Below, piece by piece: positions 7,701 through 37,586 of a stretch of DNA of 64,000 nucleotides. Origin of the DNA: Heteronotia binoei (lineage: Eukaryota); the NCBI RefSeq assembly GCF_032191835.1, contig NC_083240.1:37758001-37822000 (forward strand), in the 5' to 3' direction. Every line of letters starts with the position of its first letter. Position 1 is the stretch's first letter. Both the position numbers and the translations under genes were made by a program. Under the pieces are notes generated by a model. That model did not search any database and was not told the origin of the DNA. It was given only the letters and a program-made list of their open reading frames with translations.

Positions 7701-8019
7701 GAACACAGGAGGAGTCCAGCAACACCTTTGAGACCAGGGGTGGCCAAACTGCGGCTCGGGAGCCACATGTGGCTCTCGTTCACACTTTCTGTGTGGCTCT
7801 TGAAGCCCCCACTACCCCATTGGCTGGCTTGGAGAAGGAGATTGTCTGATTAAATCATTTAAAATTGCTTTCTTTCCATCTCTCCCAAGCCCCATCTTCC
7901 TTCCGTCTGTCTTCGAGTTCTCAAACATCTGACATTCATGTCTTGCAGCTCTCGAACATCTGGTGCTTATTCTATGTGGCTCTCACGTTAAGCAAGTCTG
8001 GCCACTCCTGTTTAAGACC

Positions 8020-8400: not shown

Positions 8401-9371
8401 TAATACAGGAGCTGGTTTTTGATGCTTTTCGAAGGCACGGTATAACCAGTATGCACACGTGCTTTTGACATGATGGGTGTTTCGTTGGGAGTAAGGGGAA
8501 CGCTCCCTCTGCTGCAGGCGGAATAGAGTGCAACGTTTTGCATGCACTTCCTCTATATTTCGAATTCTATTTTGAATTTTTTGAGCTATGACTCTTTATT
8601 TCCAGTGGCTTTTGTGCTTCAAGTTGTATTTTGAATGGAATTTGAATATCTCAATTGGCACTCTAAAATATAACATCTAACGGGAGAGGGCTGCCATTGC
8701 ATCTGAATCTATTGTGCTTTGGTACCAACTGCCTAGGATCTGTATGTGTTGAGAAAGGAAAATATTACACGATCCGCCTGAATACATGAAGTAGCACGAT
8801 TGCAATTTTATTCGATTGTTTTACTGTCTTAATATCGCTGACTGGGGGCAGGAAGGAGTCTGGGAAAGTGGAAGAACCCCCGCTGGGACCTGGGGATTGG
8901 CAAGCCTAACTCTACGGCAATATACCCTGCTGAGGTCCCTCCTCAAACCCCACCGTTCCCAGACTTCACCCCTGAAATCTCCAGGAATTTTCCAATCTGG
9001 AGTTGGCAATCATACTCACGAGCTACAGGGATGTGCTGCAAACAGTATAGAGACAACAGCACCAGGTTGCATTACTGGGCTAGTCCAAAGACTCCTATGA
9101 GGAGGTTAGAATAAAGGTTGGGAAACAGGGCATTGTTAACTGTTTTCTTTCAGTGGCAAGTCCTCTGTCCCCCCCCCCCCCAATAATATGGGGTCAGCAA
9201 GACCAGTCTCTACCATAAGATGGTCATAATATTGTTCCTGGTTTGGGTAGTATGCAAAGGGGGACTTTTCCCTTGTATTCCTGCAGATGTCCTTTTAGCC
9301 AGCAATATATGATAAAAGTATTATGACTTAAGGTACTATTATCATTGATTTTCTTCTCCCGTCCCCTTCAG

Positions 9372-9437
9372 AAAACCACAGTGTGCAGAACTGCAAGTGA
9401 CTTCATAAGGAAAGATTCTGGACACATCAGCTCAGAG
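9372..9437 (+). CDS. ITGAE: Integrin alpha-E exon following the HASPIN intron (KTTVCRTASDFIRKDSGHISSE)
   Basis: cccttcag acceptor, GTAAAA donor, 66 nt phase 0-0, only open frame; position and TVC motif match human ASTVCTWSQ exon. Confidence 0.8.
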
Positions 9438-9979
9438 GTAAAAGGGGCCTTGGCACTGTTGGTGCCGCATAAATCTTTTGTGAAATCGTGGCTGTTTGCG
9501 AGAAGTCAAAAAGTCACCAAAATAAACAACAATTTGCAGCATCTTAAAAGATTCTCAGTTTTTTATTCCAGCGTAAGTTTTTATGGGCTACAGCCCACTT
9601 TGTCCGATTCAAGGATTGGCTCCTCTCTAGGGGTGGTGCTTATCTGCATGTTGGATTTTGATCTAGGAAACCTGAGTCCAAATCCTCAATCTGCCTTAAA
9701 ACACACTGGGTGATCTTAGGTCAGTTACTACCTGTCCGCCTGACCTCCCTCACAGGGTTGTTGTGAAGATAACATGGAGGAAAGGAAAAGTATGTGCCTG
9801 AGTTCATTGGAAGAAAAACTGGATAAAAATGCACTAGATAGCGATCTGGTCCGGGTCAAACAACCCCTCTCCATCTGCTGGAAGGCTACAGTTGCCATAT
9901 TCAAAACAGGAGCAATTCATTCTGGGCTTGACGTTTCTAGACATGTGCTCTGTGACAGCAATAAGTTGATGGTTGTGAG

Positions 9980-10174
9980 CAGTGTTCCCTCTCCGTTGAG
10001 TGAGTGTGAGCTAGCTCACAGGTTTTTCGCCTCTGGCTCACACATTTTTTGTCTTAGCTCAGGAAAAATGGCCCCAGAGTAAACTAATTTATGCAGTAGC
10101 TGACAACTTTAATGCCCATAGCTGATGAAGTAGAATATTTGGTCCCAAGACTCCATAGCTTAGAGGGAGCATTG
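9980..10174. mobile_element. About 195-bp hAT MITE (TIR CAGTGTTCCCTCT)
   Basis: 8-bp TSD GTTGTGAG; further copies 44497-45011 (two), 47802-48017, 48060-48161, 54518-54713, 61543-61738, 63812-64000. Confidence 0.9.
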
Positions 10175-10272
10175 GTTGTGAGCCCCAGTTTTTTCCAACA
10201 GTGCTAAATGTTCTCTCTCTGGCTTGTGTCCCCTACTGGGAAAAATCTCATTTGGCCACCTTTGTTTTTCAG

Positions 10273-10374
10273 AACAGTGAGCCAATCCAATACCAGCTTG
10301 TGACCTGTGCTATTGTGTCGGAGAAAGAGAAAGTTACTGTGACCGCAGAGCTGACTTTAGTCAGTTCTTTGCAG
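10273..10374 (+). CDS. ITGAE: Integrin alpha-E exon (NSEPIQYQLVTCAIVSEKEKVTVTAELTLVSSLQ)
   Basis: tttttcag/GTAT boundaries, 102 nt; resembles human HSVSCVIASDKENVTVAAEI. Confidence 0.92.
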
Positions 10375-10471
10375 GTATATTCTGCCCCGTCTATCAGCTG
10401 TGCTTGCTTGAAGACTGGAAAATCACATCAAACCATAGTTTGCTGTTCATATCATCCCCTTTCTTCTCTAG

Positions 10472-10567
10472 GTCTTTAAAAACAGCACTGGTTTGGTCGT
10501 TACTGGAAAAATAATTTTCAACAGAGACCTTTATGTGGGCTTGAATGAAAAACTCCATAAAACAGAG
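10472..10567 (+). CDS. ITGAE: Integrin alpha-E exon (VFKNSTGLVVTGKIIFNRDLYVGLNEKLHKTE)
   Basis: ctctag/GTATG boundaries, 96 nt; resembles human GEISFNKSLYEGLNAENHRTK. Confidence 0.92.
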
Positions 10568-10769
10568 GTATGAGAGAGGTGGGATTCTGGGCTCTTTTTC
10601 CTATGGAGGAGAAAAGGTAGAACCAAAGTGGGATGTGAGGTTGGTGTTCCTCTTTTGCTCAGTATGGGTGGATCCCATGGGGTGCAGGGAGGAACCAGAG
10701 AAAGTGGGCTAGCTCTGCTGAGGTAATTCTGGCCTACCTGAAAGGTTTGGTGTAAGGCTTTTGTTGGTA

Positions 10770-11391
10770 CATTAGTGAAATGCTTAGAGTATTCACAAGC
10801 TCACCTTAACCTATCAATTCAGTATAGTCAAATGGCCCAATATCTTCATAATCTCAGCCACCCCGGCCATCGTAGAGCCTTTACATTAGCGCAGCTGAAT
10901 GTCTTCCCCTCTAATATGCTGTTGGGTCAATTTCATAACATTCCCTTACAGGAAAGACTCTGCAGCTGCCCCACTACTGATATTGACTCAATTTCCCATA
11001 TTATGTTCGATTGCCAATTACATACAGAGTCTCGCAATAAACTTCTACCCTTATATTCTGACCTATTTAGAAACCAATATAGCACAGTTCGATATTTGCT
11101 TAATGATATTTGCACAGAAACCACTAATACGGTAGCTAAATGTTTAACAGAAGCAGTTGTTCTTCCAGGGGTAGGGAACAGTGGCTCTCCAGATGTTTTT
11201 TGCCTACAATGGCTGGGATTGATGGGAGTTGTAGGCAAAAAACATCTGGAGAGCCACTGTTCCCTACCCTGACTTAGACATAGGCTTTTTATATGAACTG
11301 TGCTTTTTTGGGATAATTTTAATCACTGGAAGTGTATGTTGCAATGAATCTTTTAATACTATTATGCCATTAAAGGTTTTTGATTTGATTT
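10770..11391 (+). mobile_element. LINE 3' end (L2-like; C-terminal CxC...HxxxDC), interrupted by a small MITE at 11165-11271
   Basis: RAFTLAQLNVFPS..ERLCSC..SISHIMFDCQLH; (TTTGA)n tail; second copy at 13020-13341. Confidence 0.7.
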
Positions 11392-11997
11392 GAAATGCTT
11401 AGGTTAAAAGCAGTAAAGGAGGGAAATGTAGCCCAAATTAAGCACTTAATTAATACCCCATTCATTTTAATGGATAAATTGGACTGAGCAGCACCATGCT
11501 GTGCTTTTTAAGTAAGCTCCATTCATCCTGACGAAATTTACTTCTCAGCACACATGTAGAGGCTCTGGCTGCAAATCTCTCCCACTGAAATAAATTTAAA
11601 TTACTTAGCTTTTGGCTGGATACAAGAATCTAAAGCCAGCTTTCATAAGTGAATGGGGGAAGAGAAGGGCTGTGTCCTGGAGTGTGGGAAATCAGAATGT
11701 TCAAACTAGTTTAAGATGTCGGTGAAAGATCAGGTTCTGGTTTAGCAAGACATCTAAGAAAAATAAGCTGAGATCTACACCAAGGGTGGTGGGCACTTTG
11801 GTTCAGATTTCCCCTCTGCCAAGAACAGACTCTGTCTCAGCCTTAGCTCCTCCCTCATACAGGTTAGTAATACTGGCCTACCTTCTAAGACTGGCTTGTA
11901 AGGATTACAACAAGATAGCATGTGTAGAGTGCTTTTGGTTTGAGAATTTATATACAAATGACATTAGCTCCCATGTTTTTGGTTTTTTTAAAACCAG

Positions 11998-12108
11998 ATC
12001 ACTGTTTTTTTGCTGAAAGAGATTGACTTTAATTATATTCCTGTCCTTGTTGGAAGCTCTGTCGCTGGGATTTTGGTCTTGGCTTTTATTGTTGTTATCC
12101 TTTATAAG
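11998..12108 (+). CDS. ITGAE: Integrin alpha-E transmembrane exon (ITVFLLKEIDFNYIPVLVGSSVAGILVLAFIVVILYK)
   Basis: ccag/GTAAG boundaries, 111 nt; hydrophobic TM helix ending in K before the GFFKR exon. Confidence 0.95.
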
Positions 12109-13019
12109 GTAAGCATCAATCTTTCCTTACACGTCAAGTGTTTAATTCTCTTTCAGCTGTGTATATTTTAGGACTGCTATGTTGTTATTAGTGATAGGCT
12201 GACTTTCTCTGTTTTAATCTTAGTGGGAATTAAAAAAACCCCCACTGCCAATAGAATTTAATAAAGAGTTAGGGTCCCCAAATTAGGCTCTCTCCAACAC
12301 CTTTTCTGGTGTTTTTAGGGAGTAGTTGGGACATGGTAGGCTTCTGATTTACTATTGACTAAGCCACAGTTCTGTCAGAACTGTTCTCTCAAGAGCAGCT
12401 CTCTCAGCCCCACCTACCTCACAGCATGTCTGTTGCGGGAAGGGGAAAGGAAGGAGATTGTAAGCCTCTCTGAGACTCCCAGTGAATCAAGTCTCCTTCT
12501 CCTCCTCCTTTGATTGGCTGTGCAGATTTTTTAAAATGTTGTTTGGGAAGAAGCTTCCACCACAGCGCAAGGATCTTCACTGTATTACTGAAGTTAAGCT
12601 GTGGCAGCTATTTTGTTGCTTGCATCCACCGTGCTGTGCCAGAATGCCAAATGTGCCTACAGGCTCCAAAAGGTAGGGACCCCTCAAATGAGACTGGGAA
12701 GTAGAAAATGAGGGCAACAGTGATTTGTGCAGAGCTGGGGCCTTTTTTTGAGCAGGAATGCACAAGAACACAGTTCCAGCTGGCTTGGCATCAGGGAGTG
12801 TGGCCTAATATGCAAATTAATTCCTGCTGGGTGTTTTCTAAAAGCCCTGTGTGAAACAATGGTGATGTCAGAAGGTGTGGCCTAATATGCAAATGAGTTC
12901 CTGCTGGGCTTTTTCTACAAAAGAAGCCCTGTTCAGAGCTAACTTCTTGCAGGTGTGGAAGTGAACAAAGAGTACGAGTCCCGGCTTTCCAGCTGTCGGA
13001 ATGGCTTGTAGATGCTTAC

Positions 13020-13341
13020 GAATACTTGCCTCCAATTCAATTGATTCAATTTCCCATATTATGCTTGATTGCCAATTACACACAGAGTCTCGTAACAAAC
13101 TTCTACCCTTATACTCTGATCTATTTAGAAACCAATATAGCACAGTTCGATATCTGCTCAGTGATACTTTTACAGAAACTATTAATACGGTAGCTAAATT
13201 TTTAGCAGAAGCAGTTGTTTTTAGATATAGGCTTTTTATATGAATTGTACTTTTTGGGATGAATTTTTATCACTGGAAGTGTATGTTGCAATGTATCTTT
13301 TAATACTGTTATGCCATTAAAGGTATTTTGATTTGATTTGA
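13020..13341 (+). mobile_element. LINE 3' end, sister copy of 10770-11391
   Basis: Close similarity to 10985-11391 without the MITE. Confidence 0.75.
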
Positions 13342-13381
13342 CTGAGCTATAATGCATATTTCTGTTTCTTCTTGTTTCCAG

Positions 13382-13438
13382 GGTGGCTTTTTCAAAAGGA
13401 ATTACAAAAAAATGTTAGAAGATCAGCGCAGATCCTAA
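13382..13438 (+). CDS. ITGAE: Integrin alpha-E terminal coding exon (GGFFKRNYKKMLEDQRRS*)
   Basis: tttccag acceptor; integrin alpha GFFKR signature; TAA stop. Confidence 0.95.
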   Translation, partial: GGFFKRNYKKMLEDQRRS

Positions 13439-13764
13439 GTGAGGCAAGATTCCAATTATAGGGGAAATCACCCAGGAACTCCCTTGGGCTGTATAGAAAA
13501 AAAGAAAAATCCAACTTATCCAAGCTGAAAAAAGCTTCCGATTCTGACTTGGCACCATTTACTTCTGATCTGGGAATTTTACAGAGTGGGGAGTTGGATG
13601 AGCTGCAGAGCCAGCCTGAGCAGAGTTATGCTCTTTGTCCATTTAACTTTGAGCTTAGAAAGGTGTGACTTTGCTTGGGTTTGCAGTGAGAATCATTCAC
13701 TTGCTTAGATTGCAAGTGGTTTGGATTTTAGCACGACTTGGTCAAATGTGGCCTCTTCTGGCTG

Positions 13765-13770
13765 AATAAA
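13765..13770 (+). terminator. Candidate ITGAE polyadenylation signal AATAAA
   Basis: First canonical AATAAA noticed after the ITGAE stop (about 330 nt downstream). Confidence 0.5.
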
Positions 13771-14193
13771 AAAGAAAGTTTACGTCACGATCAGAATGAG
13801 TGTAATGTGCATGACCCAGGGACCTTGAGGTGTTTCTGCTACAGCTTTTGCTGTGATGTTAGACCTATGTGCTGTGTAAATGAATCCGGATGGCAGTGTC
13901 CCTTTGTACCAGGCACACCAGTGTCCTGTAGGGGGCCAGGTCAGATCCTTCCTCTTCTTGGTTCTGCTGCTGTCTGTTTACCCAACATGCTAATCTCTTC
14001 CTTCAAGCTTGACTTCCTTCAAGCTTCTTCCTTTCCTGTCTTTGTTTTCCCTCTCTGACCTCCTTGAGACCAACATGTGCTGTCCCTGAGAATCAAACTA
14101 GATGTTATGGGCGACATGAGCTGGGGAACGGGTGCCTGACTTGCTGTCACACATACTGAACGATCCAAGTGGGCAGTTGTGTCGGTCTGAAGT

Positions 14194-14278
14194 TGTTGAA
14201 CAAAGCAGGAGTCAAGTGTTACCTTTAAGACCAAGTTTTGGTCTTAAAGGTGCAACTTGACTCCTGCTTTGTTCAACA
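14194..14278. repeat. 85-bp near-perfect palindrome from an inverted Penelope-type tail
   Basis: 41-bp arms, 3-nt loop, one small internal mismatch. Confidence 0.9.
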
Positions 14279-16639
14279 TATTGAATGGCGGAACTGACCT
14301 TGAAAGGGCTCCATGGTGCCATTTGGCTCCTGCAAAGGAGGGGGAAGGGCTTCTGGTTTCTCTCCCTTACTGTTTTCATTGGGAGGCCTTGTTTGCCTCT
14401 TCTGGAGGAGTCAGCTGGTATTAAAGCCTCTCCTCACCTCTGCCCATTATTGGTGTTCTTCTGAAGCCTGGAGAGAGCCCTGGCAGAAGTAACCCTGTCT
14501 GCCTGCTGCCAGTCTGTAGCTGGCTTTTCTCAACGAGGCTGGGAGAAATGTGGTTTCCGGCACCAGCCAGTGAAATGGCCCTGTCCCTAGAGGAAGGATT
14601 TCATGGGAGGCGGAGTGGCCTGGCAGTGCCAATAATTGGCCTCTAATTAGACTGATGTGTGCCTGCGTGGAGGGCTCTTAGCATGCCTCCCCAGGGTGCA
14701 TCTGTAGACAGAACAGTTGCTCATTAAGGGTGACTTAAGGGATTCAGAGCCGTTCTGGAGCTCCTCTGGGTATGGTTTGTTTTTAATGACTTCTGATTTG
14801 CAAAAATCATTTTTTTTTAAACTTGAGATTGTTTTTACACCCTGCCCGGCCTTCACTGCCCAAAGCGGCTTACAATCTCCTTTCCCTTCCCCTCCTCACA
14901 AGACACAGCTTTGGATGGAATAGGGCAGCTAGCTCATCTTTTGGTGGTGCTGAAGCTAAAAGAGGTTCTGGAGGGGGTACCAAGTATGGCAGGGGTGTCA
15001 AACTCATTTGTTATGAGGGCTGGATCTGACATAAACGAGACCTTGTCGGGCCGGGCCATGTCAGGCCAGGATGGGCCATGTCAGTCTGGGCCATGTGTGT
15101 ACCTATTTAAGATTAGGTAGCAGCAGGGTTTTTTTTGAGCAGGAACGCAGTTCCAGCTGGCTTGGTGTCAGGGGATGGGGCCTAATATGCAAATGATTCC
15201 TGCTGGACTTTTCCCACAAAAAAGCCCTGTGAAACAATGGTGACATCAGGGGGTGTGGCCTATTATGCAAATAAGTTCCTGGGTAGCAGATATATAAACT
15301 TCATAAAGGACACAAACACTATTAATTTAAAAAAAAACTTGAAACATGCTTAAAACATTAGCACTCATTGATTATAAAGGTACTTTCCTTGTATTTCTCC
15401 CATTGATCCGGGGAACTGGGCAAAGGCAGCTCTGGCTCTTTCCTTCCTTCCCCAGGGGACTGGTGGGGGAAGAGCCTCAGCCAATAGAAGAGAGGCTTGG
15501 CTAGCCCTGCTGTGTGATTGAGAGAGCCTGGCAAAGCAAGCTCTGCCTCCCCTAGGAAGGAGCCTCAGCCAATGGAGAAAACAGAGGTTTTGCTCTGTGG
15601 CTTCTGTGAGCAAGCCTGGCAAAGCAAGGTGTTATTGCATTAGGAAACAAGAGAGGGTAAAGGAAGCAGGTGACAGCCAGTTGCTTGGGGGCCTGATAAG
15701 AGCCCTCCAGCCACACCCCTGAAGTAGGGGATGCTAAAGCCTCTCCTCAGCTCCACCCATTGTTCCTGTTCTTCTGGAGCCTGGAGCAGAGCAAGCTCAA
15801 GAGCAACAAGTTCAAAAATCAGGGCCAGCCTTGAGCAACCACAGCAACTGGACTCCCTACATCAGATCAAAAAGTAAGGATCCTAAGAAATAATGTGATC
15901 CACCCCCTCTTTTAAGGTGACACTCTGTGGGAGGCTGAAAGAGCTCCTTTTAAAAAAAACCCAGTGATCTGCAACTGCATACGATGCAGCAGACACATAC
16001 GAGAAATCAAAAAGAACCCCTGCACCTCGCGTTTGTCTTCACATCTCCAATAAAGAAATTACGTTGAAGTTGTAAAAGCTACCACCCACCAATTCCTCTC
16101 CCCCTCCTCAGAAACAGTCCATTCTACTTCGGGATGGGGGTGGGGAGGGCATTTTCTTTCTTGTCTCCGTTCTCTACCCACCACACATTTATTCAAAAGG
16201 AAGCCTCCCTGAATTCAACGGGCCACACATACAGCCAAGCAAAGAGAGTTGGGGTGTAGTGGTTAGAACACCAGCCTAGGATCTGGGAGACTCAGGTTGA
16301 AATTCCTGCTCCATCATAAAAGCCTGCTGCAGTGACCTTGGGTTGGTCTCGCTTTCACTTACCTCGCAGGGTCGTTGACACCCCTGCCACACTCTCGCTT
16401 TCACTTACCTCGCAGGGTCGTTGCGAGGATGAAATGCAGGGGAGCAACGCAAGCTGTTTTGGGTCCCCATTGGAGAGAAACGTGCACAGCAGTTTGATAT
16501 CCCGCCCCCCAACATTTGTATCCCTTTCTGCCCTAACAAGGACCACTGAGGTGGCTAACGATTGAAAACATACATAATAAAAGTTGCATTTCCAACCCAT
16601 TAAAACCCATCCCCCTCCTAAACACCTCCTTGAAGGACG

Positions 16640-17050
16640 AGGGCCCAGGCATTTGACAAGATGTCTGCTCGGTGCTGCAGCAGTCGATAAGGCCAACTCT
16701 GTGTTGAGGATTATTAGAAAAGGAATTGAAAAGGAAAACGCCAGTATGGTAATGCTCTTTTAGGGAATTAGGATGCATCATTAGGAGAACCCGATCTCTC
16801 TCAAAAAAGATATTGCAGAACTGGAGAAAATGGCAAAGGGAGCAACCAAAATGATTAAGAAGTTGGAACATTTTCTTATGAGGAAAGGCTGAATAGTCTA
16901 GGGCTTTTCAGTTTAGAAAGGCACAACAATTGGAGGGACATGATACAGGTTTATAAAATTATGCATGGAGTTAAGAGGGCAGAAAGAACTTTTTTCTCCA
17001 AAAATATTAGAAATTGAGGGCATCCAACAAGGCTATAGATTCAGGATAGC
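16640..17050 (+). mobile_element. Degraded CR1 fragment
   Basis: aaggccaactctgtgttgaggattattagaaaaggaattgaaa and atgaggaaaggctga CR1 motifs with frameshifts. Confidence 0.8.
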
Positions 17051-19434
17051 CAACTTCTTTATTTAAGAATTTCTTTTGGCTAACAATCATGTAAGAAGAC
17101 CAAACCAGTGGTCCATCAAAGCCAGCATCCTGATAGAGGACGGGGCTTTCCACCGATGTTGCCGCCTCTCTTTGGTCACAATGGCTAGTAACCATTGTAT
17201 TTCCCCCACTTCCTCTTTGCAAGGTTTAAGCTCTTTACGGTGTTTCACCTTCTGTCTATGAGTCTGCATCATCCACTTATAAAGCCATCGAAACTCACGG
17301 CCACCTCTGCATCCAGCAGCGAACTCCACAATTAAATCTCCTGTTGAATAAAAGAACTATTTCCTTTTTAAAATGTTATTATATTGATAACCTCCCCGCA
17401 AAATGGGCTTGTCCATCTTAAGAGCTCTCCTGGTTTGCAGGTCGCTTGTTTCACACCCAAAATGCAGCCAAAACCACGTGCAGACATAATATCTGCAGTC
17501 AGCTCACTCTTGCAAGTCTGGGAAGAGAATGAGTGGCAGGCCTTTGGCCATGTGCCTAGCCCAAAGAGGTTATTTGTAGAAGCATGTCTGAGAAGCGGGA
17601 GAAAGGACTGTTCAAGGGCAGTTCGGCCCCAAACATTCTTTCCTGGCATGTTAATCTAGCTGGACACCATTAAATCCCCAAGCGTAGCTTTTTTTCAAGC
17701 TGTTCTGGCCTTTGCCAGTGAGAGTCAGTCAAAGTGTGGGTTGCTATGGTTTTGAAGGAGGATGTGGGAAGTGTAGAAAAGGAAGAGCATTTGGAGAAGA
17801 ATAGATTCCAGCCTGGTGTGTTGCTCCTTCAGAGAGCAAAAATCACATGCCGGGTGGGGGCCAGGGACACGTCTGAGATGCCACCTCCTTGTTCCCAGGT
17901 TTGGGACTGGCTAGTGCAAGAACCGCCATCACAGCTTGTGCAAGTAGATTTAGATTTATTGGATTTCTATCCCACCCTCTCTCCGCCAAAGCAGGCTCAG
18001 GGCGGCTCACAACAGTAAACAGTAATAATTCAATAAGTACCGAGTTAAACACAGACAATTCATAAAATTAACAAGCTAAACAATTAAAAAGTGTGGTGCT
18101 AATGTCATTTGATTCATTCAGTGCTCTTTAGGTATCCTGATGTTTCTGTATCAGCAGTTCAAATGAAAGGCGAGCTGGAATAATGTTGTCTTACAGGCCT
18201 TGCGGAGCTGGGCGAGGTCCCGCAAGGCCCTAATCATGGGGAGTCAAGAGTGTAAAGGTGCTGCTGGAAATGCTTTCATTCTGAGGGTGGATATTTTTTT
18301 TTACCATATTAACATCCTCCCTTCTTCTAGTGTGAGATTAAAGATGGTATACATGTAAGAGATCCCAGGAGGTCTCCCAGCCAGGTACTGTCTACATCCT
18401 GACCTGCTTAGTTTCTGGCAAGGTTCCCATGTCATGTGACCTCATTCCTAACGTTCTGTCTCTTTAAGCACTTCCTGCATCACAGCACAGAAACTGTAGA
18501 TATCTGATCTGTGTGTAGGAGACTTGTCAAGGATCATTTCCGGGGAGCACCACCTGAACAGCTGAGAGGGGATGGGCACCCCGGGTCAGCTTGCTGTGTT
18601 CTCCGCCATCCTTGCTTTCAATCATGTACTCTGTAGTAGATGACTCTGGGAGAAAATCTGAACCTGGTTTTCCCAAATCATAGTTCAGCAATATACCACT
18701 GTGGTTTCCTGGTGAAAAAGAAATGGGAAAGAGCCAATAAGGACTGGCCTCCTGCCGATGTGCATCCCGTGATGACTGGTTTTAAGGATACCCCCAGGAT
18801 TTCCTGCAGTGTAACTGGAAAAACCTCTGGTCCCTCTAGGGTTGCCAGATCTGAGCTGGGAAATACCTGGAGATTTGGGGGTGGGGTTTGAGGAAGGGAG
18901 GAACCTCAGCAGGGTAACGCCCTAGAGTCCCCCCCTCCAAAGCAGCCATTTTTTCCAGGGGAACTGATCTTGGTCATCTCGAGAGCAACTGTAATAACAT
19001 GGGATCTCCAAGTGCCTCCTGGAGGATGGCAACCCTAGGTCCATCCAATTTCTTGGCAGGGGCGTTTCCAGGCCTTGCCTGATTTGACTCCCTTTCTTAT
19101 TTCAAAAGGACGTGAAACTCTTCCTTTTAGGATTACCAAATGAAAGTTGAGGTTGCCTAGTGCTGAAAAATCCCCTTCCTCTTTAAAAACGAATAGCTGC
19201 AGAAGCACAAAATATGGGCAGCCTCAATCAGCATCTGTTCAATAATAACCAGGTTGCCACAATGCTCAACCCTCTGAATTATTACGTCTCTGAGTAGAGT
19301 TGCCAACCTCCAGGTAGTGGCTGGGGATCTCTCACTAGCCAACCCACAACCAGGCTCAGCTATGGGGGTATCTGAAGTGAGCAGTGACTCACAAAAAGTT
19401 CCTACCTTGCCACAAATTTCTCTAGTCTTTAAGG

Positions 19435-19991: not shown

Positions 19992-21189
19992 GATTTTATG
20001 TGCTCCTGGGCCCTTGCTCTTTTCTACCTTGTTCCCCAGCTGATGTTATTGACCTCTGTGCCACAGAAAGCATCACCTCCTCATATCCACTTCACAGTCA
20101 CATTTGTTCCTACCTTCTTTGTATAAAAGTTTGTATTTTCTTCCTCCCTGCAATATTTAAGCTCCTTAAGGTGTTCACAATAATTTCCTTTTGCCAACCT
20201 GTTTCTCCAATTCTGCAGCCAGAGTGGATTTCTGCATCCTCACAGCATTATCTGCTATAATGAATTCCTCCTCCGTTTTTGAAATTTTTTTCTTCTAGAA
20301 TTTTGTGGTCTTCTCCGGATGCCATCATTATCGCACGCTTGATGAATGAATAAATAAATAGTAATTTAATGCCCCTATAAGGCTTCATCTCATTCTATTT
20401 TTTTTTTTAAACATGGGGTTGGGGAGAGACATTTTTGAGCACAAATGGCAGCTCAAAAATTGGAGGGGCGGTCCTGCAGGCAGTCTGACAACTCCCCATT
20501 TATACACCCCAGTGGGGTGTCTAATGGAGGCAGAAAACTCGGGGCTGCCTTTGACACGGCAAAAGCAGACGATCTAGCTCCCCCCACCATTTAAACGACC
20601 CACTGGGGTGTTTATATGGGGGGGGGGGAAAGCCTCAGGGCTGCTTTTGCTGCAGCAAAAACAAATCATCTGTGCAAAAACACTATGTAAACTTATTCAG
20701 GGGTGGCCAAGGGTAGCTCTCCAGATGTTTTTTGCCTACAACTCCCATCAGCCCCAGCCAGCATGGCCAATGGCTGGGGCTGATGGGAGTTGTAGGCAAA
20801 AAACATCTGGAGAGCTACCGCTGACCACCCCTGTTATATGTAATACTCCATCAAATGCATATAAATCGTATTGCATTGCTATGTCTTGCAGTACAAAACG
20901 TTCATAATTCCAGAACAGTACAAGATCAGCACACCAATCATCATCTTCAGACGCTTGTATCCTTTCCTTCGATAGGTGCAGAGACCCCACTGACTGTATT
21001 CTTTGTAGGTCTATACAAGGATTGCTATTCAAAGCAGAGGGATCGCCCTGAAATCCCATCCCCAGAGCCGTTTTCTTGCCAATTGACCTCTCCCGCGAGC
21101 AATGTCGCCAGATCTTCATTTGCAGCGCTTGATATGCGTGGTAAATAAAAAATAGTAAATTAACAGCTAATTTCCTGACCACCCGCACC

Positions 21190-21850
21190 CCCCTCTGACT
21201 GACAACGTCTGGCAGGTAACCGTTGGAGGAGAGAACGCGTCCCCCTTGCTCCGCCTCCAAAAGTAGTTCCTCCAGCTCCGCCTCCTCCCGCCCGTTAAAG
21301 AAGAAGCCCAGCCCCTTTCCTCTCCTGGCGCGCTCCCCCAGCCCAACCCTCTGACTGGCAACGTCTCGCAAATAACCGTTGGCAAGAACGTGGCCCTCTT
21401 GCTCCGCCTCGAAAAGTAGTTCCGCTCCGCGCAGCCGCCCCGAGGGATAGACGTTCCCTGCTTCGAACGAGCGACCGTTGAGGAGGCTCCTCCTTCTCCC
21501 CCAACGGCTCCTCCCGCCCGTTAAAGACACCCAGCCCCTTTCCTCTCTTGGCCACGCCCCCTCCTTACCCAGACTGAGAACGTCTGGCAAAGAACCGTTG
21601 AGGAGAACGTGGCCCTCTTGCTCCGCCTCGAAAAGTAGTTCCGCTCCGCGCAGCCGCCCTGAGGGAGAGACGTTCCCTGCTTCGAACGAGCGACCGTTGA
21701 GGAGCCTCCTCCTTCTTTCCCGACGGCCCGTTAAAGACACCCAGCCCCTTTCCTCTCTTGGCCACGCCCCCTCCTTACCCAGACTGAGAACGTCTGGCAA
21801 AGAACCTTTGAGGAGAACGCGGCCCTCTTGCTCCGCCTGGAAAAGTAGTC
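21190..21850. repeat. GC-rich tandem repeat, about 3.5 diverged units of about 155-220 bp, upstream of DNLZ
   Basis: Recurrent blocks cttgctccgcctcgaaaagtagttcc and cccgttaaagacacccagcccctttcctctc; last two copies near identical with 210-bp period. Confidence 0.95.
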
Positions 21851-21877
21851 CCCCTTCTCCTTCTCTTCAGGGGCGAA

Positions 21878-22342
21878 ATGGCGGGCTCGGGGCGGCTGCT
21901 GCTGCCGCTGCTGGGCCGGCTCGTGCTTGTGGGGCCGCGCCGGGCCGCGCTGCCTGGGGCACTCCAGAGAGGCTTGGGGGGCGGTGGCGCGGCTGTGGCG
22001 GCATCTCCGCGCCTCGGCCTGGCCTACACGTGCAAGGTGTGCGGGGGGCGGGCGGCGCAGACGGTGTCGCGGGCGGCCTACGAGAGGGGGGTGGTGGTGG
22101 CCACCTGCCCCACCTGCCGGAGCCGCCACCTCATCGCCGACAACCTCGGCTGGTTCGCCCACCTGCCCGGCGGCCGCAGGAACGTCGAGGAGATCCTGGC
22201 GGCGAAAGGGGAGACGGTGAAGCGGGTCGTGGGCGGCCAGGAGGACTTGGAACTCTTCCTCGAGGACTCCGACAAATCCCCGGCCCAGGCCTCGGGAAGG
22301 GCTGGAAGAGAAGCTTTGGCGCCTGGGAAAGATCCAGAGTGA
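21878..22342 (+). CDS. DNLZ: DNL-type zinc finger protein (Zim17/Tim15/HEP1 mtHsp70 escort chaperone), intronless copy, 154 aa
   Basis: YTCKVC...CPTC...[11 protein letters not shown]...[12 protein letters not shown] zf-DNL signature; Arg/Leu-rich N-terminus without acidic residues; good Kozak (gaaATGG); no introns or disablements. Confidence 0.9.
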
Positions 22343-23168
22343 TTAGGGTGGGTTTAAATAGTAAAAAAACCCGCTCTGAACAATTCTATATGGAAATAAT
22401 TTTTCCACACATTTTTCTATTCTTTTAAACATGCATATTTCATTAGAACTCAAAATATACAACTTACATTGTAAAAAAACCCCACTGTGAACGTTTATAT
22501 ATTCAAATAATTTTTGCACTCTCAGGTTTTTTTTACAATTTAAACCAATCTATACACTGTGGTTTCCGGTTTGTACTAATCCCCAGGTGGGGCCAGGGAA
22601 TCCCCTGGTCTGGAGCACCCCCACCCCTTCAGGGTCATCAGAAAGCAAGGGGGGGCGGAATGCCTGCTGGGCATTCCATGGTTGCCTATGGAGACCGATG
22701 CTCATAGAGTATAATGGAGAATTGATCTGGGGCTGGGGGGGAAGCTGTTTTTTTAGGTAGAGGGACCAAATTTGCAGCGAAGCATCCAGTGTGTCTCCTC
22801 AAAATACCTTCCAAATTTAAAAAAGATTGGACTAGGGGGTCCAATTCTATGAGTCCCCAAAGCAGGTGTCTTCCCTATTTCCAGTGGAGGGAAGACCTTT
22901 AAATCTGATAGCCCAGAACTCCCTTTGGAGTTCAATTATGCTTGTTAGAACCTTGCTCCTGGCTCCACCCCAAAGTCCCCAGATATTTCTTGAATTGAAT
23001 TTGGCAATCCTAGATTAGGGACTCTCTTGCCTTTGGACGGGACAGCCCCTTTTGTTTTTCAATGTGAAGAGAGACTTTATGGAAATCTCCGTTCCAGTGT
23101 TTCAGACTTTTCCTACTGTTTCCTGATAAATGCCCCCTTTTCGTATGAGAATTGAAGGGGGGGGGAGT

Positions 23169-23413
23169 AGAAGAAGAAGATGATATTGGATTTATATCTC
23201 GCCCTCCACTCCAAAGAGTCTCAGCGGCTCACAATCTCCTTTACCTTCCTCCCTCACAACAAACACCCTGTGAAGTGGGTGGGGCTGGAGAGGGCTCTCA
23301 CAGCAGCTGCCCTTTCAAGGACAACCTCTGCCAGAGCTATGGCTGACCCAAGGCCATTCTAGCAGGTGCAAGTGGAGGAGTGGGGAATCAAACCCGGTTC
23401 TCCCAGATAAGAG
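23169..23413 (-). mobile_element. Squam3-like SINE, 5'-truncated
   Basis: Reverse complement of the family consensus seen elsewhere in the window. Confidence 0.85.
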
Positions 23414-24327
23414 TAGTTCTGGTCTGAGGGGAAAATGGGCTTTTTTTTAAACCCCCAGCCACCCTCCAAAAAACCCTGATCCCTCTGCACACACAGGTAT
23501 TATGTGGTGTTTTGGTTACTCTAGATATCCTTAAGCACTGTGGTTCTCTAGGCGTGTTCTTTTTTAATCTCCAGGTGCGAGCTGGAGATATCTCAGAGTT
23601 ATAACAGATTTCCAGATTATATCAGTTGTCATTTATTGACATTTATACCCTACTGGCATCCCTCCCCTTGTTAACCCTCGGTATCTCAAGGCTCCGCTCT
23701 CAAATCTCCGGGATTCCCCAGCTCAGCATTGGCAACCCGGTTCCATAGAGAGGCATATACATATGCAAGAAAACTAGAATATTTCTAAAGGCAGAATTTT
23801 TAACAGTTAAAAAAAGTTAAGTCAGATTTTAAAGATGTCCGGCGAATAAATTATTTGCCTGGAATAGTGGTACTGGCACTCTTAAGAGGCTGATGGATGA
23901 ATTTAACAAGGAACAAGACTGAGAGCAACAAGTTAAAAAATCATAGGCAGCCTTGAGAAATCGGAGCAACCAGACTCTCCACAGAGTGAAGGTCCTAAGA
24001 AATAAATGATCTCTCCTCTCTTTTATTTAAGGTAAACACTCTCTGGGAAGCTGAAAGAGCTCCTCGCTCCTCACTGTCTTCTGCCTCCGACACAGGGAGA
24101 AGGGAGGCGAATCTCCACTTCTTTGACCCTTTGCTGACGACATCCTTCCTGCAGAGACTGAGGACTGCATCCATTTGAGGAGCCTGAGGAACGGCAGAAA
24201 AACCCTCACCAACATTATTAGGGTAATGAGACTGCTGAAGGCCTTCAAGGAAAATGGTGCCTTGTAAGGGAGTACCCAGAGTATGGAGATGTGACTCAGC
24301 ATCAAGGGGACCAGAGTAAGGAACATA

Positions 24328-24669
24328 AGAGAAGCCATGTTGGATCAGGCCAATGGCCCATCCATTCCAACACTCTGTGTCACACAGTGGCCAAAAAAAT
24401 TATATATACATATATATACACACTGTGGCTAATAGCCACTGATGGACATCTGCTCCATATTTTTATCCAGCCCCCTCTTGAAGCTGGCTATGCTTGTAGC
24501 CACCACCACCTCCTGTGGCAGTGAATTCCACATGTTAATCACTCTTTGGGTGATGAAGTACTTACTTTTATCCGTTTTAACCCGATTGCTCAGCAATTTC
24601 ATCGAATGCCCATGAATTCTTGTATTGTGAGAAAGGGAGAAAAGTACTTCTTTCTCTACTTTCTCCATA
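24328..24669 (-). mobile_element. CR1 LINE 3' fragment, same family as 32320-32999
   Basis: Near-identical reverse complement of 32660-32999. Confidence 0.92.
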
Positions 24670-32319: not shown

Positions 32320-32999
32320 AAAGTGTCAAGACAGTGTGCGTCTGCAATAAAAAAGGCCAACGCCATGCTGGGAATTATTAGGAAGGGAATTGAAAACAAA
32401 TCAGCCAGTATCATAATGCCCCTGTATAAATTGATGGTGCGGTCTCATTTGGAGTACTGTGTGCAGTTCTGGTCGCCGCACCTCAAAAAGGATATTATAG
32501 CTTTAGAGAAGGTGCAGAGAAGGGCAACTAGAATGATTAAAGGGCTGGAGCACTTTCCCTATGAAGAAAGGTTGAAACGCTTGGGACTCTTTAGCTTGGA
32601 GAAACGTCGACTGCGGGGTGACATGATAGAGGTTTACAAGATAATGCATGGAATGGAGAAAGTAGAGAAAGAAGTACTTTTCTCCCTTTCTCACAATACA
32701 AGAACTCGTGGGCATTCGATGAAATTGCTGAGCAGACAGGTTAAAACGGATAAAAGGAAGTACTTCTTCACCCAAAGGGTGATTAACATGTGGAATTCAC
32801 TGCCACAGGAGGTGGTGGCGGCCACAAGTATAGCCACCTTCAAGAGGGGTTTAGATAAAAATATGGAGCAGAGGTCCATCAGTGGCTATTAGCCACAGTG
32901 TATGTGTGTATATAACATTTTTTGCCACTGTGTGACACAGAGTGTTGGACTTGATGGGCCGTTGGCCTGATCCAACATGGCTTCTCTTATGTTCTTATG
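32320..32999 (+). mobile_element. 5'-truncated young CR1 LINE (3' end of ORF2 intact, 32323-32892)
   Basis: HLEYCVQFWSPHLKKDI...EKRRLRGDMIEVYKIM...RTRGH motifs; (TTCTTATG)n tail; TAAACT on both outer flanks. Confidence 0.95.
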
Positions 33000-33409: not shown

Positions 33410-35686
33410 ATGGAAGGAAGGGACAGTAAAATAACTTTCAAAAGGTGCTCGCGCTGTAGGGCGAAAATCCCTACATCGGACGGGCATTCGCTTTGCTTGT
33501 TCTGTTTGGGAGAATCCCATAAAGTGGACGCCTGTGCGCACTGCCTTCAATTTTGCAAACAGGCGCGAAAAAACAGAGCCGCTAGACTCAGAAGCCACTT
33601 AATGGAGTCTGTGCTCCAGCCTGATATGTCGCAATCTTCGTCAGCAAGTAAGTCGCCTCCCCTACTGACTCCCCAAGGGGACGGCGCAAGGTCGGCAGCT
33701 TCAGTGGCCATTGCTCCCAGCAAGCATAAGTCCGGCGATGCCGCGAAAGCCGGCGACGGCGCGAGAACGTCAGAACAAACGGCCGCGGCGACTAAACCAA
33801 AGGGCGGGAAGCACACTAAGAAACATAAGCATTCCGACCCGAAGGGCCAGAAGGATTCGAGAAAACCGTCCGATCCGAAGGCTCCGCGGAAACCGACAGA
33901 CCCGAAGGACCCGAAGATTCCGAAGGACTCGAGAAAATCCTCCGAACAACAGAATGAGCCTGAGACGCAATGCGAGCCTTCCACTCCCGGATCCGACACC
34001 CAGGAAGTGACCACCCCGGCTACGGAGTCGCCGCACCAGCAGACGGAAGAAGTTATTCCCATTCCGTCCCGATCCCCTTCCCCGCATGGATCCATGCTAG
34101 ACCCTGCGCTGGAGCCGATTCGAGACCCGCAACAGTGGACTCGACACCACATCAATCCTAGATCGTTCCGCGATATGTCGAATCCCATCCAGCACAAACA
34201 TGATGCTTACAGGTACTTCGATGCGCATCGGTTCCCAGCCAGGTCTCCCAGCATGGAGAGATATAGGTACCATCATGCGCGTTTCCCGGAGAGATCCCCT
34301 AGTAGAGGGAGGGACCGCCATCGCTACAACCCGAGATCTCGGTCCCCATCCATGTCCCCGAGGCGACGCCATTATGCTTCAAGGTCTCCTTCCATCGAAT
34401 CCCATGCATGCTGCGGATACCATCATTCTCGGTACCGAACCGATTATCACATGAACCCATCCAAGGAAGCGACTCCTGTCCAACGGAGCAAGCAACCACC
34501 GAGACAGCCGTCTCCGACTCCTTCCACTTCGACTTCTAAACCTAGGGGTGCGATTCCAGTGGAACCCAAAAGCACGACTCCAACCAGACCGGACCTACCT
34601 GAACCCGAACCTGACTCTGATGCTGAATCCGAAGCTCAATCATCGGATTCGATACAGTCCATGTCCCCTGGGTCCCCTGCTTCAGATATCGCCAAGCCCG
34701 CGGATTTGTCACCTTCCGAAGGGGCAAAGACATACCTGGACTTGATTGCCAATATGGCCTCTGCACTTAACGTAACTCTGACTTCGGATGCACCCAAGGT
34801 GACAGACGTGGTACACGACCTGGTGCACTCAGATTTACCTGCTGGTTCCTTTCTGCCGATGCTGCCGGTACACCTAGAAGCCATCAAAGAAGCTTGGGAC
34901 AACCCAGCCTCCATTCCCCCGGCTTCAAAACGAATCGAATCCCTTTATAGGATCCAAGCACCGGATTCGAAATTTTTATTTAGCCATCCAGCACCGAATT
35001 CTCTGATAGTGCATTCATCTTCTAAAACCAAACAGACCCGCCACCCGGTACCCCCTGAGAAGGAAGGCAGGAAGTTAGATACTCTTGGAAGGAAAATGTA
35101 TTCAATCTCGACGGCAACTGCCAAGATCAACAATTACCTAGCATACTTCGCCGCGTATTCCCACAACATCTCCTCCCAACTGAATACGCTAGTCTCTGCC
35201 CTGCCTGAGCCCTCCCAGAAACAAGCCTGCAAGCTACTTCAGGAGCTCAACAGGATTTCAAAGCAACAGATAAACACCATCCGTCACTCTGTGGGGTGCA
35301 CTTCCAAGGCGATGGCCGCCTCCATTGCCCTAAGGCGACATGCTTGGCTTCGATCCTCTTCGTTGCAGCCTGATCTAAAATTCAAGATAGAAGACCTTCC
35401 CTTCGATGGCCAAGGTCTCTTTAATGCCACAACGGACGATATACTGTCCACCGTGGATGACAGCCGCAAACGAGCGAAAAGATTGGGGGTAGCCCAACAG
35501 CAACAACAACAACAGAGCTATAAGCCCAGATCATGGAAACCAACCCCCTTCAAACGTTCCAGATCCCCTCGACAATCTGAATACTGGAAACGTAAAGCTC
35601 CTCCTCCAAAGCAATCCTTTAACCAGAGACAGCAGAGACCACAACCACCTAAAAAGGCTGCATCTTCATCGAAGCAGTCTCTTTGA
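33410..35686 (+). CDS. DIRS ORF1, gag-like (N-terminal C/H zinc finger, RS-rich region, LAP2alpha-like C-terminal domain), 758 aa
   Basis: CSRC..CLFC..H..CAHC cluster; C-terminal EAWDNPAS...FLFSHPAPNSLIV...EGRKLDTLGRK typical of vertebrate DIRS1 gag; uninterrupted. Confidence 0.9.
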   Translation: MEGRDSKITFKRCSRCRAKIPTSDGHSLCLFCLGESHKVDACAHCLQFCKQARKNRAARLRSHLMESVLQPDMSQSSSASKSPPLLTPQGDGARSAASVAIAPSKHKSGDAAKAGDGARTSEQTAAATKPKGGKHTKKHKHSDPKGQKDSRKPSDPKAPRKPTDPKDPKIPKDSRKSSEQQNEPETQCEPSTPGSDTQEVTTPATESPHQQTEEVIPIPSRSPSPHGSMLDPALEPIRDPQQWTRHHINPRSFRDMSNPIQHKHDAYRYFDAHRFPARSPSMERYRYHHARFPERSPSRGRDRHRYNPRSRSPSMSPRRRHYASRSPSIESHACCGYHHSRYRTDYHMNPSKEATPVQRSKQPPRQPSPTPSTSTSKPRGAIPVEPKSTTPTRPDLPEPEPDSDAESEAQSSDSIQSMSPGSPASDIAKPADLSPSEGAKTYLDLIANMASALNVTLTSDAPKVTDVVHDLVHSDLPAGSFLPMLPVHLEAIKEAWDNPASIPPASKRIESLYRIQAPDSKFLFSHPAPNSLIVHSSSKTKQTRHPVPPEKEGRKLDTLGRKMYSISTATAKINNYLAYFAAYSHNISSQLNTLVSALPEPSQKQACKLLQELNRISKQQINTIRHSVGCTSKAMAASIALRRHAWLRSSSLQPDLKFKIEDLPFDGQGLFNATTDDILSTVDDSRKRAKRLGVAQQQQQQQSYKPRSWKPTPFKRSRSPRQSEYWKRKAPPPKQSFNQRQQRPQPPKKAASSSKQSL

Positions 35687-37586
35687 CTTTCTACCTCTAC
35701 CACTTCAGCACGTCTCCAGGCTTCTTCCATTTCTCGACAATTGGCAACAAATAACCACAGACAAATGGGTTCTGAACATTATTTTGAGGGGCTACTCCAT
35801 AGAGTTCCAAGCACCACCAAAAAGACATCATTTTGTTTCCACTCCCCCATCACCTTCCCTTCAGGAAGAAATAGACACCTTAACAGCCAAAGCGGCTATA
35901 GAGCCTGTCCCAGTCCAGTATCATCGGACAGGTTTTTATTCCAGGTACTTTCTAGTCCCGAAAAGGGATGGGGGACAGCGCCCGATTCTGGATCTAAGAG
36001 CCCTAAACAAATTCATCCGCCACAGAAAATTCAGAATGATCACCTTACAATCGATTCTGCCATTAATCCCCAGAAACTCCTGGATGGCACTGGTAGATTT
36101 ACAGGACGCATACTTCCACCTGACAATACACCAATGCCACAGGAAGTTTCTGCGTTTCGCCGTTGGCAACAACCACTACCAGTTCCGAGCTCTGCCCTTC
36201 GGACTTTCCACGGCACCACGGACATTCACAAAATGTATGGCGGTTATTGCAGCGTACCTCAGGCAACGCGGCGTTGCAACCTACCCATACATAGACGATT
36301 GGCTCCTTGTGGGAGCTTCAAGGACACAGTTGATGAAGGACATTTCCATCACACTTGCGCTCCTAGCAAACCTGGGCCTCCAGGTCAATCATCAAAAGTC
36401 ACACCTTACCCCAACTCAAGACATTCAGTTTATTGGGGCTCGTTTGTGCACCACGGACCACAAGGCGTATCTTCCTGTGGACAGGATATCCTCCATTCAG
36501 ACGCTGGCCACACAAATAATGCAACAACCCAAACAAGCGGCCTTCAACATTCAGCGCATGTTAGGACTTATGGCAGCCACAACGGCAGTTCTGACACACG
36601 CAAGACTACGCATGCGAACCCTACAAATCTGGTTCGTCCGCGCGTTTCGACCCCAACACCAATCTCAAGGAACGGTCCTCACTGTTCCGAGCCACATCCT
36701 CCCTTCGCTCGAATGGTGGACAGTTCGAGCTCACCTGCTTGCGGGAATGCCCTTTTTACGGCCAAGTCCATCAGCAGTGGTTACAACAGACGCCTCGAGA
36801 TGGGGCTGGGGAGCTCATCTCGACGTACTCACGGTCCAGGGGCAATGGACACCGTACGAACAGTCGCTCCACATCAATTGCTTAGAGCTTCTAGCTGTTC
36901 ACAGAGCGTTAAAATCGTTCCTTCCATCTCTTCAAGGCCTACACGTACAGATCGCCTCAGACAATGTGGCGACGGTTTTTTATATAAACAGGCAAGGAGG
37001 GACAGCATCCACCCGCCTTTGCAAAAGAGCAATGCACCTGTGGCATTGGAGTATTGCCCATCAGATTCACCTCACTGCGGTACATCTTCCTGGCATACAG
37101 AATGTTCAAGCGGACAGACTGAGCAGATATTCCATCAACGACCACGAGTGGTCACTCCACCGGTCATACCTTCTGCCAGTATTCCGGAAATTCGGAACTC
37201 CGTCAATAGATGCGTTTGCTGCACCAGACAATGCACAGTGTGCGATCTTTTTTATGAGAGGTCCGCCCTCACAACAGTCTGCAGGGGATGCCTTCATACA
37301 GACGTGGACCGGTCCACTACACTTCCTCTTCCCTCCCTTTCCGTTAATAACACGGTGCATACAGAAAATTCAACTGGACAACACAGATTGCATTCTCGTG
37401 ACGCCATGGTGGCCACGTCAGCCATGGTTCACAACCCTTCTCCTCCTGTCAGAAAGCACTTACCATCACTTCCCTCTGGCACACAACCTCCTGTCCCAAC
37501 AGAACGGCAGGGTTCTGCACCACGACCCGAACAGACTTCGCCTGACGGCCTGGAGGATATGTTCTCAGACTTTCCTGAAGGAGTAA
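35685..37586 (+). CDS. DIRS ORF2: reverse transcriptase, RNase H, phage-type adenine methyltransferase-like domain
   Basis: RPILDLRALN, DLQDAYFH, LPFGLSTAP, YIDD; RNase H TDAS..GWG, HINCLEL, DN, NVQADRLSR; MT-like DAFA and FPPF; frame open from 35493; true start unknown. Confidence 0.93.
   Translation, partial: DFLPLPLQHVSRLLPFLDNWQQITTDKWVLNIILRGYSIEFQAPPKRHHFVSTPPSPSLQEEIDTLTAKAAIEPVPVQYHRTGFYSRYFLVPKRDGGQRPILDLRALNKFIRHRKFRMITLQSILPLIPRNSWMALVDLQDAYFHLTIHQCHRKFLRFAVGNNHYQFRALPFGLSTAPRTFTKCMAVIAAYLRQRGVATYPYIDDWLLVGASRTQLMKDISITLALLANLGLQVNHQKSHLTPTQDIQFIGARLCTTDHKAYLPVDRISSIQTLATQIMQQPKQAAFNIQRMLGLMAATTAVLTHARLRMRTLQIWFVRAFRPQHQSQGTVLTVPSHILPSLEWWTVRAHLLAGMPFLRPSPSAVVTTDASRWGWGAHLDVLTVQGQWTPYEQSLHINCLELLAVHRALKSFLPSLQGLHVQIASDNVATVFYINRQGGTASTRLCKRAMHLWHWSIAHQIHLTAVHLPGIQNVQADRLSRYSINDHEWSLHRSYLLPVFRKFGTPSIDAFAAPDNAQCAIFFMRGPPSQQSAGDAFIQTWTGPLHFLFPPFPLITRCIQKIQLDNTDCILVTPWWPRQPWFTTLLLLSESTYHHFPLAHNLLSQQNGRVLHHDPNRLRLTAWRICSQTFLKE

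Follow-up and report, generated by a model that had tools for sequence, protein, structure and literature searches.

How does a gene for a mitochondrial co-chaperone come to lie, as a single uninterrupted exon, between ITGAE and P2RX5? The question is raised by a stretch of 64,000 nucleotides of the genome of the gecko Heteronotia binoei (contig NC_083240.1, positions 37,758,001 to 37,822,000 of the forward strand), referred to here as the window, which carries a copy of DNLZ. DNLZ, or HEP1, is a single-copy, normally indispensable co-chaperone that keeps mitochondrial Hsp70 (mtHsp70) active; yeast Zim17/Tim15 and human HEP1 keep mtHsp70 soluble and stimulate its ATPase. An earlier note, made from the letters of the window alone, had proposed a candidate functional retrogene at a non-syntenic locus. 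Weighing all the evidence, we find it reasonably probable that the copy is a working DNLZ gene (a HEP1/Zim17-type mtHsp70 escort protein) of H. binoei that arose as a processed retrocopy. Its history would comprise four steps. (i) Retroposition: the spliced mRNA of an intron-bearing gekkonid DNLZ, with a structure of the type found in Gekko kuhli, would have been reverse-transcribed. (ii) Insertion: the cDNA would have entered the interval between ITGAE and P2RX5. (iii) Recruitment: the copy would have been placed directly downstream of a CpG-rich tandem array, which probably serves as its promoter. (iv) Function: since the encoded protein retains an N-terminus like a presequence, a zinc finger with four cysteines, and the R-H...D/DNL surface, we predict that it would enter mitochondria, where it would maintain mtHsp70 (HSPA9) in soluble form and stimulate its ATPase.

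The open reading frame (ORF) of 154 codons is free of disablements, as the earlier note had it, and the protein appears, judged by its sequence, to be an ordinary member of the zf-DNL or DNLZ-HEP1-Zim17 family. It matches the Pfam zf-DNL profile (PF05180) with 87.6 bits (cut-off 27; E = 5.3e-25) over profile positions 2-63 of 64, and yeast Tim15/Zim17 (PDB 2e2z) by sequence with E = 2.5e-16. An AlphaFold model made from 30 homologues has a well-predicted core (predicted local distance difference test, pLDDT, of 83-91 for residues 41-80); the model of the whole protein is poor (mean pLDDT 62) because both ends are disordered. The sole significant PDB match of this model is, again, 2e2z Tim15 (Foldseek E = 1.1e-4, prob 1.00). 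Both CxxC pairs of zinc ligands that had been read from the sequence are in place (C52-K-V-C55 and C77-P-T-C80), in four columns that are invariant in 30 vertebrate sequences, and so is the R-H-x-x-x-D motif (R83-H84...D88), whose residues matter for Hsp70 stimulation according to the yeast Zim17 literature. Across 30 vertebrate DNLZ proteins, 33 columns are invariant, and the window copy retains 33 of 33. The first 47 amino acids (aa) contain six R/K and are free of D/E, and acidic residues start at E69; this presequence-like composition agrees with a mitochondrial presequence. Identity amounts to 44-50% with other vertebrate DNLZ proteins and 68-76% with gecko DNLZ.

The gene that encodes this protein elsewhere in squamates is built differently. 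In Anolis and Rhineura, DNLZ has three coding exons and is flanked by CARD9 (a CARD-domain gene) and GPSM1 (a TPR+GoLoco gene), which bears out the proposal that the window locus is non-syntenic; in human, DNLZ adjoins CARD9 and GPSM1 on 9q34, and ITGAE and P2RX5 adjoin each other on 17p13. DNLZ and HASPIN, a marker of the ITGAE locus, lie on different chromosomes in Rhineura and Sceloporus (the contigs differ in size). The ancestral intron 1 is of phase 0 and falls at K|V within YTCK|VCG, and intron 2 is of phase 2 and falls inside the R codon that precedes N-I/V-EEIL. Anolis, Rhineura, and Gekko kuhli, each with three exons, have both introns, and the window copy has neither; its former intron sites are at 22036|22037 (phase 0, K53|V54) and 22179|22180 (phase 2, in R101). 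Squamate DNLZ is thus not generally a single-exon gene at ITGAE-P2RX5.

Two geckos retain introns. In Gekko kuhli, both introns are GT-AG with ancestral positions and phases, and the spliced model equals the annotated protein exactly; intron 1 measures only 90 nt (L004 10151-10240), is a multiple of three and contains an in-frame stop, and intron 2 measures 2.5 kb. In Sphaerodactylus townsendi, intron 1 is gone and intron 2 (7.1 kb; L003 895-8036) is retained in the same phase. The two intron 2 sequences share stretches with each other, and the Gekko and Sphaerodactylus genes are therefore orthologous at the DNA level; together they present a pattern of stepwise intron loss within DNLZ. No CARD9, GPSM1, PGAM5, or ITGAE sequence was found within 10 kb of the Gekko kuhli gene, nor CARD9 or GPSM1 within 10 kb of the Sphaerodactylus gene, which sits at a scaffold end; a look-up of Sphaerodactylus HASPIN gave no record.

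The homology of the window copy to the other gecko genes stops where the transcript would. On the 5' side, the four gecko genes (Heteronotia, Gekko, Sphaerodactylus, and Paroedura picta) share about 35 nt before the ATG: the remnant of the 5' untranslated region (UTR) in the window aligns with the CT-rich tract and the GGCGCAAG-ATG of the other three, and farther upstream no homology was found in the gecko comparisons. On the 3' side, the common 3'UTR of the four geckos spans ~130 nt and ends shortly past a (G/C)ATAAA hexamer; the window has GATAAA at 23125-23130, and homology to the parent-type genes ceases about 23 nt later. Beyond the poly(A) signal, Gekko and Sphaerodactylus have a conserved block in common (local score 53 vs. 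a shuffle maximum of 24) that was not found in the window (23 vs. 27) or in Paroedura (19 vs. 26). With homology confined to the mature transcript, both introns removed exactly, and the loci new, retroposition is the simplest explanation, and we regard it as likely. We go no further than that because the poly(A) and target-site hallmarks of retroposition were not found and in situ intron loss also occurs.

The points that weigh against a retroposed origin are the following. No poly(A) tract follows 23153, and a short interspersed nuclear element (SINE) begins at about 23158; decay of the tail, or insertion of the SINE into it, could be the reason. No convincing direct repeat was found that could be the target-site duplication (TSD) of the retrocopy itself, the flanks being occupied by the SINE on the 3' side and the tandem array on the 5' side, and a search downstream of the copy for the rest of the interrupted array unit was negative. 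Introns are being lost stepwise in place in gecko DNLZ, as the missing intron 1 of Sphaerodactylus and the very short one of Gekko attest. Finally, an empty ITGAE-P2RX5 site was not seen in another gecko: collinearity of the Paroedura HASPIN locus (L007) with the window extends to 17723, and L007 runs for only about 1.3 kb more, which does not take it as far as DNLZ.

These points would also suit a different history, in which the copy is the ancestral gene itself, moved by a DNA-level rearrangement in gekkonids and relieved of its two short introns successively in place, e.g., by gene conversion with cDNA. Partial intron loss in Sphaerodactylus and the shrunken intron 1 of Gekko, together with the missing tail and TSD, agree with such a course; so does the gene tree, which matches the expected family relationships, and with no CARD9 or GPSM1 near the Gekko or Sphaerodactylus gene, DNLZ may have become mobile in geckos beforehand. 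Yet the window copy loses homology to these two genes at the transcript ends, whereas they, the more distant pair, share sequence past the poly(A) signal and in intron 2. Moreover, such a course would take three events, a move and an exact loss of each intron, against one for retroposition, and the window has no collinear flank in common with the Gekko locus (0 collinear blocks between the window ITGAE 3' region and the Gekko DNLZ locus, vs. 11 with the Paroedura ITGAE locus). We therefore think a moved ancestral gene quite unlikely. Collinear Gekko matches at 24326-24395 and 24488-24663 were considered as a sign of locus orthology and rejected, since they belong to a dispersed repeat with further copies at 32410-32989 and 16835-16968.

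The retrocopy, if it is one, has since been interrupted. Between the stop codon and the 3'UTR lies a composite transposable-element insertion of 664 bp, bounded by an exact 8-bp duplication, GATTAGGG, at 22341-22348 and 23013-23020, which is its TSD. Its first part resembles a miniature inverted-repeat transposable element (MITE), with 22-nt terminal inverted repeats (TIRs) at 22351-22372 and 22525-22546 that are 91% complementary; this element also carries an internal 46-nt direct repeat. The A7 tract at 22363-22369, which the earlier note had taken for a possible poly(A) remnant, sits inside the left TIR and is mirrored by T8 at 22529-22536, so that this interpretation falls away. The extent of the gene has to be redrawn likewise: 22343-22369 lies outside it, and the 3'UTR resumes beyond the insertion. 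At least 10 SINE copies, 85-95% identical, are present in the window.

That the locus is transcribed follows from Logan contigs of three RNA-seq runs of one study (organisms A and B). Contigs of the three runs are 98-99% identical to 22022-22352 and run on from DNLZ into a locus-specific segment farther downstream, which forms the 3' part of the transcript in the RNA-sequenced animals. On the unique flanks, at 20953-22009 and 23520-23972, the RNA depth drops to zero; contigs on the coding sequence next to empty flanks argue for transcription of the DNLZ locus rather than DNA carry-over. In 3 of 3 runs, the contigs skip 22353-24029 and land at 24030 or 24041. The joint from 22352 to 24030 was considered as an intron and rejected, its ends being non-canonical (TT..TA) and X1 having 22 other letters there; the skip is probably a genomic deletion allele of 1.68 kb that removes the conserved 3'UTR and its GATAAA in the RNA-sequenced animals. 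The contigs of all three runs also carry an in-frame insertion of 6 nt, CCGGCG, behind 22166 (LPGGRR becomes LPGAGGRR), which the reference lacks. The RNA evidence consists of contigs only, from a single study, and bears no tissue, strand, or transcript-start information, and the first 140 nt of the coding sequence are free of RNA coverage; both facts temper the case for a working gene.

Pairwise omega (dN/dS) was calculated within geckos because maximum-likelihood dS is saturated against outgroups. Between the window copy and other geckos, it spans 0.17-0.39 when the whole gene is taken and 0.03-0.35 within the domain. With window-specific changes assigned by the majority state of the other three geckos, the window branch has 26 nonsynonymous and 23 synonymous changes, against a neutral expectation of about 36 to 13; its pN/pS of 0.42, a branch-wide value that mixes time before and after the relocation, stands beside 0.36, 0.42, and 0.62 on the other gecko branches. 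Insertions and deletions relative to other geckos are in frame without exception. The window copy thus appears to be under purifying selection at the level of the intron-bearing gecko genes. Taken together, the loss of both introns, omega well below 1, and RNA contigs on the coding sequence strengthen the proposal of a functional retrogene; neither a dN/dS near 1 nor a lack of expression was found.

One comparison points the other way. The reference and the RNA-run animals differ at 10 coding positions, eight nonsynonymous and two synonymous. Seven of these eight fall in the linker or the tail, two parts with little conservation in any DNLZ gene, and outside the domain omega reaches 0.4-1.4 even between the intron-bearing genes of Gekko and Sphaerodactylus. 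Because the linker and tail evolve almost neutrally in all DNLZ genes, we treat the 8:2 ratio as a mild caveat and not as evidence of decay. The ratio could also befit a processed pseudogene that is transcribed without being functional and whose ORF has stayed open by chance in a GC-rich setting. The DNA here is 72% GC and stop-poor, with overlapping frames also open over 143-316 codons, and a long ORF in such DNA, taken alone, is weak evidence of a gene; the RNA-run animals, moreover, lack the 3'UTR that other geckos conserve, along with its poly(A) signal. Such chance survival would have had to spare every vertebrate-invariant residue, hold the domain omega and the nonsynonymous count as low as they are, confine indels to multiples of three, and maintain the CpG content, and it would leave the genome with no other known DNLZ for a normally indispensable co-chaperone. 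We consider a pseudogene highly improbable.

The tandem array upstream of the window copy is a candidate promoter. The array ends exactly at the start of the DNLZ 5'UTR; Tandem Repeats Finder places it at 21289-21849, and the degenerate copy extends it back to 21191. It was not found at the other gecko loci fetched or elsewhere in the window, and no RNA contigs lie over it. The observed/expected CpG ratio is 0.73-1.01 across 21200-22400 (0.8-1.0 in the array) and 0-0.6 in the flanks, in keeping with the CpG-island-like character noticed earlier. A CpG island in a CpG-poor neighbourhood argues for a germline-unmethylated, promoter-like state. The array is probably the recruited promoter of DNLZ.

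Is the window copy the only DNLZ of the species? Only one place encodes this exact protein sequence, its 90% cluster has a single member, and no second H. binoei DNLZ was present among the top 120 protein-search matches. The missing second annotated DNLZ is a weak sign of parent loss, because the same search gave no DNLZ protein for three further RefSeq-annotated geckos, Eublepharis, Euleptes, and Gekko japonicus, and the gene is easy to miss. Accordingly, H. binoei could still have an intron-bearing parent in a GC-rich region that the assembly or the annotation missed, with the window copy as a second, possibly tissue-specialised paralogue. The gaps in other gecko proteomes, common for a GC-rich gene, leave room for this, as does the gekkonid Gekko kuhli, which keeps the parent type, and the mostly nonsynonymous recent differences could mean relaxed or altered constraint. 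We find it rather unlikely, given that the window branch has a pN/pS equal to that of single-copy gecko genes and that RNA contigs of at least 90% likeness all fit the window locus, in addition to the search results above. Specialisation draws no support from tissue data, and nothing in the analysis favours the germline-specialised second gene that the earlier note had entertained. Of the two fates it had named, a second gene or replacement of the parent, replacement is mildly favoured by the missing second annotation, with parent loss unproven; the window copy is probably the sole functional DNLZ of H. binoei, i.e., an 'orphan' retrogene.

A single-exon DNLZ has also been found in another gekkonid. 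In Paroedura picta, the only annotated DNLZ is one exon of 149 aa (L002 10001-10450), 3.3 kb head-to-head from PGAM5 exon 1 (L002 6465-6734) on chromosome CM110988.1; HASPIN and ITGAE are on CM110990.1. No shared sequence was found between the flanks of the Paroedura and window copies, and PGAM5 exons were not found in the window or at the Gekko and Sphaerodactylus loci. In the gene tree, gecko DNLZ proteins form one clade (100/100) on a long stem of 0.83 changes per site, within which Sphaerodactylus is sister to the three gekkonids (99/94). The order of the gekkonids is not resolved, and the tree therefore cannot tell one retroposition event from two. Two events are favoured because the Paroedura and Heteronotia copies differ in locus and have unshared flanks; the Paroedura copy is probably a separate, independent retrocopy. 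On this basis, DNLZ may have been replaced by retrocopies more than once in gekkonids, next to PGAM5 in Paroedura and between ITGAE and P2RX5 in Heteronotia, while Gekko and Sphaerodactylus keep the original and gradually rid it of introns, a scenario we put forward tentatively and with some doubt. If true, an essential mitochondrial co-chaperone would have been subject to recurrent turnover by orphan retrogenes inside one family; a very short mRNA, highly expressed in the germline, and an ancestral locus that is GC-rich and unstable may have promoted this. GC content at third codon positions of DNLZ is 0.76-0.91 in geckos vs. 0.63 in Anolis, which suggests that the burst of change on the gecko-ancestor stem was GC-biased; many gecko substitutions in the domain go towards GC-rich codons.

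The chromosomal neighbourhood of the window copy is well anchored. The assembly (GCA_032191835.1) is the SM6 reference of Heteronotia binoei (PMC12811818). Placement between ITGAE and P2RX5, as proposed earlier, is upheld by HASPIN, by the 3' end of ITGAE at about 13438, and by two P2RX5-type exons (Pfam E = 1e-8 and 2e-18, respectively); all features are collected in the table. Positions 767-17723 are collinear throughout with the Paroedura picta ITGAE/HASPIN locus. Within this interval, two unique non-coding blocks 3' of ITGAE, 14450-14822 and 17449-17723, are 74-75% identical to Paroedura and may be regulatory or untranslated. Two long ORFs of 758 and 947 aa occupy 33410-38584, and a run of N, either an assembly gap or a mask, occurs at 50919-51070 in the first P2RX5 intron region.

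Table. Features of the DNLZ locus and its neighbours, in positions of the window.
Feature	Position	Strand	Remarks
HASPIN, marker of the ITGAE locus	4497-7265	-	Pfam Haspin_kinase E = 9e-77; 76% identical to Paroedura haspin
CpG-rich tandem array	21183-21849	+	219-bp unit, about 2.6 good copies and one degenerate
5'UTR remnant	21850-21877	+	CT-rich tract, then GGGGCGAA, before the ATG
DNLZ coding sequence	21878-22342	+	ATG to TGA, single exon, 154 aa plus stop
zf-DNL domain, aa 48-112	22019-22213	+	Pfam, Tim15 alignment, residue positions, pLDDT
R83-H84-L-I-A-D88-N89-L90 motif	22124-22147	+	after the second CxxC; aligned to Tim15 'VRHLIADHL'
Composite transposable-element insertion, 664 bp	22349-23012		directly 3' of the stop codon, before the 3'UTR
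MITE-like element, about 196 bp	22351-22546		part of the 664-bp insertion
Old dispersed repeat	22578-23012		part of the 664-bp insertion
Ancestral DNLZ 3'UTR	23021-23153	+	conserved in four geckos
Young SINE copy	23158-23414		abuts the end of the 3'UTR
Downstream segment joined to 22352 in RNA contigs	24030-24341	+	X1 record 2, X3 record 21
P2X receptor (P2RX5-type) exon 1	48684-48824	+	Pfam P2X_receptor
P2X receptor (P2RX5-type) exon 2	about 58454-58630		Pfam P2X_receptor

The protein and its likely function are ordinary, and the interest of the locus lies in its history. It adds a squamate case, in which the parent was probably replaced, to the small set of orphan retrogenes, and it illustrates how a nearby tandem array may supply a retrocopy with a CpG-island promoter. 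The series of gecko genes, with three exons in Gekko, two in Sphaerodactylus, and one, at two loci, in Paroedura and Heteronotia, offers a compact system for setting retroposition against in situ intron loss. Orthology pipelines based on synteny will mis-handle gecko DNLZ. We found no paper in the literature that links DNLZ to retrogenes or retroposition.

Compared to human DNLZ/HEP1 and the yeast protein known as Zim17, Tim15, or Hep1, the window copy has the same single zf-DNL domain, the four cysteines, the RH...D and DNL residues, an N-terminus that is basic and has no acidic residues, and a tail that is acidic and variable. Unlike canonical DNLZ, the gene is intronless and has ITGAE and P2RX5, not CARD9 and GPSM1, for neighbours, and the protein differs from other DNLZ in gecko-specific, GC-biased domain substitutions (AAQTVSR, VIATC, RSRH) and, in the window copy alone, in a T for the near-invariant G79 (CPTC). 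Paroedura picta DNLZ resembles it in being single-exon, the sole annotated copy, and limited to the same short 5'UTR and 3'UTR homology, and differs in its PGAM5-adjacent position and unshared flanks. Orphan retrogenes are retrocopies that took the place of an intron-bearing progenitor (Ciomborowska et al. 2013, PMC3548309), and the published catalogue rests on comparisons of human, chicken, and worm (PMC3548309). The window copy departs from these in coming from a squamate, in having neither poly(A) tail nor TSD, and in that loss of its parent is not demonstrated. It is like them in being intronless, at a new locus, apparently under purifying selection, and transcribed, with no parent annotated and with multi-exon relatives. 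In summary, the phenomenon is a known one and the window gene a new instance of it: a relocated retrogene that may have taken over from its parent.

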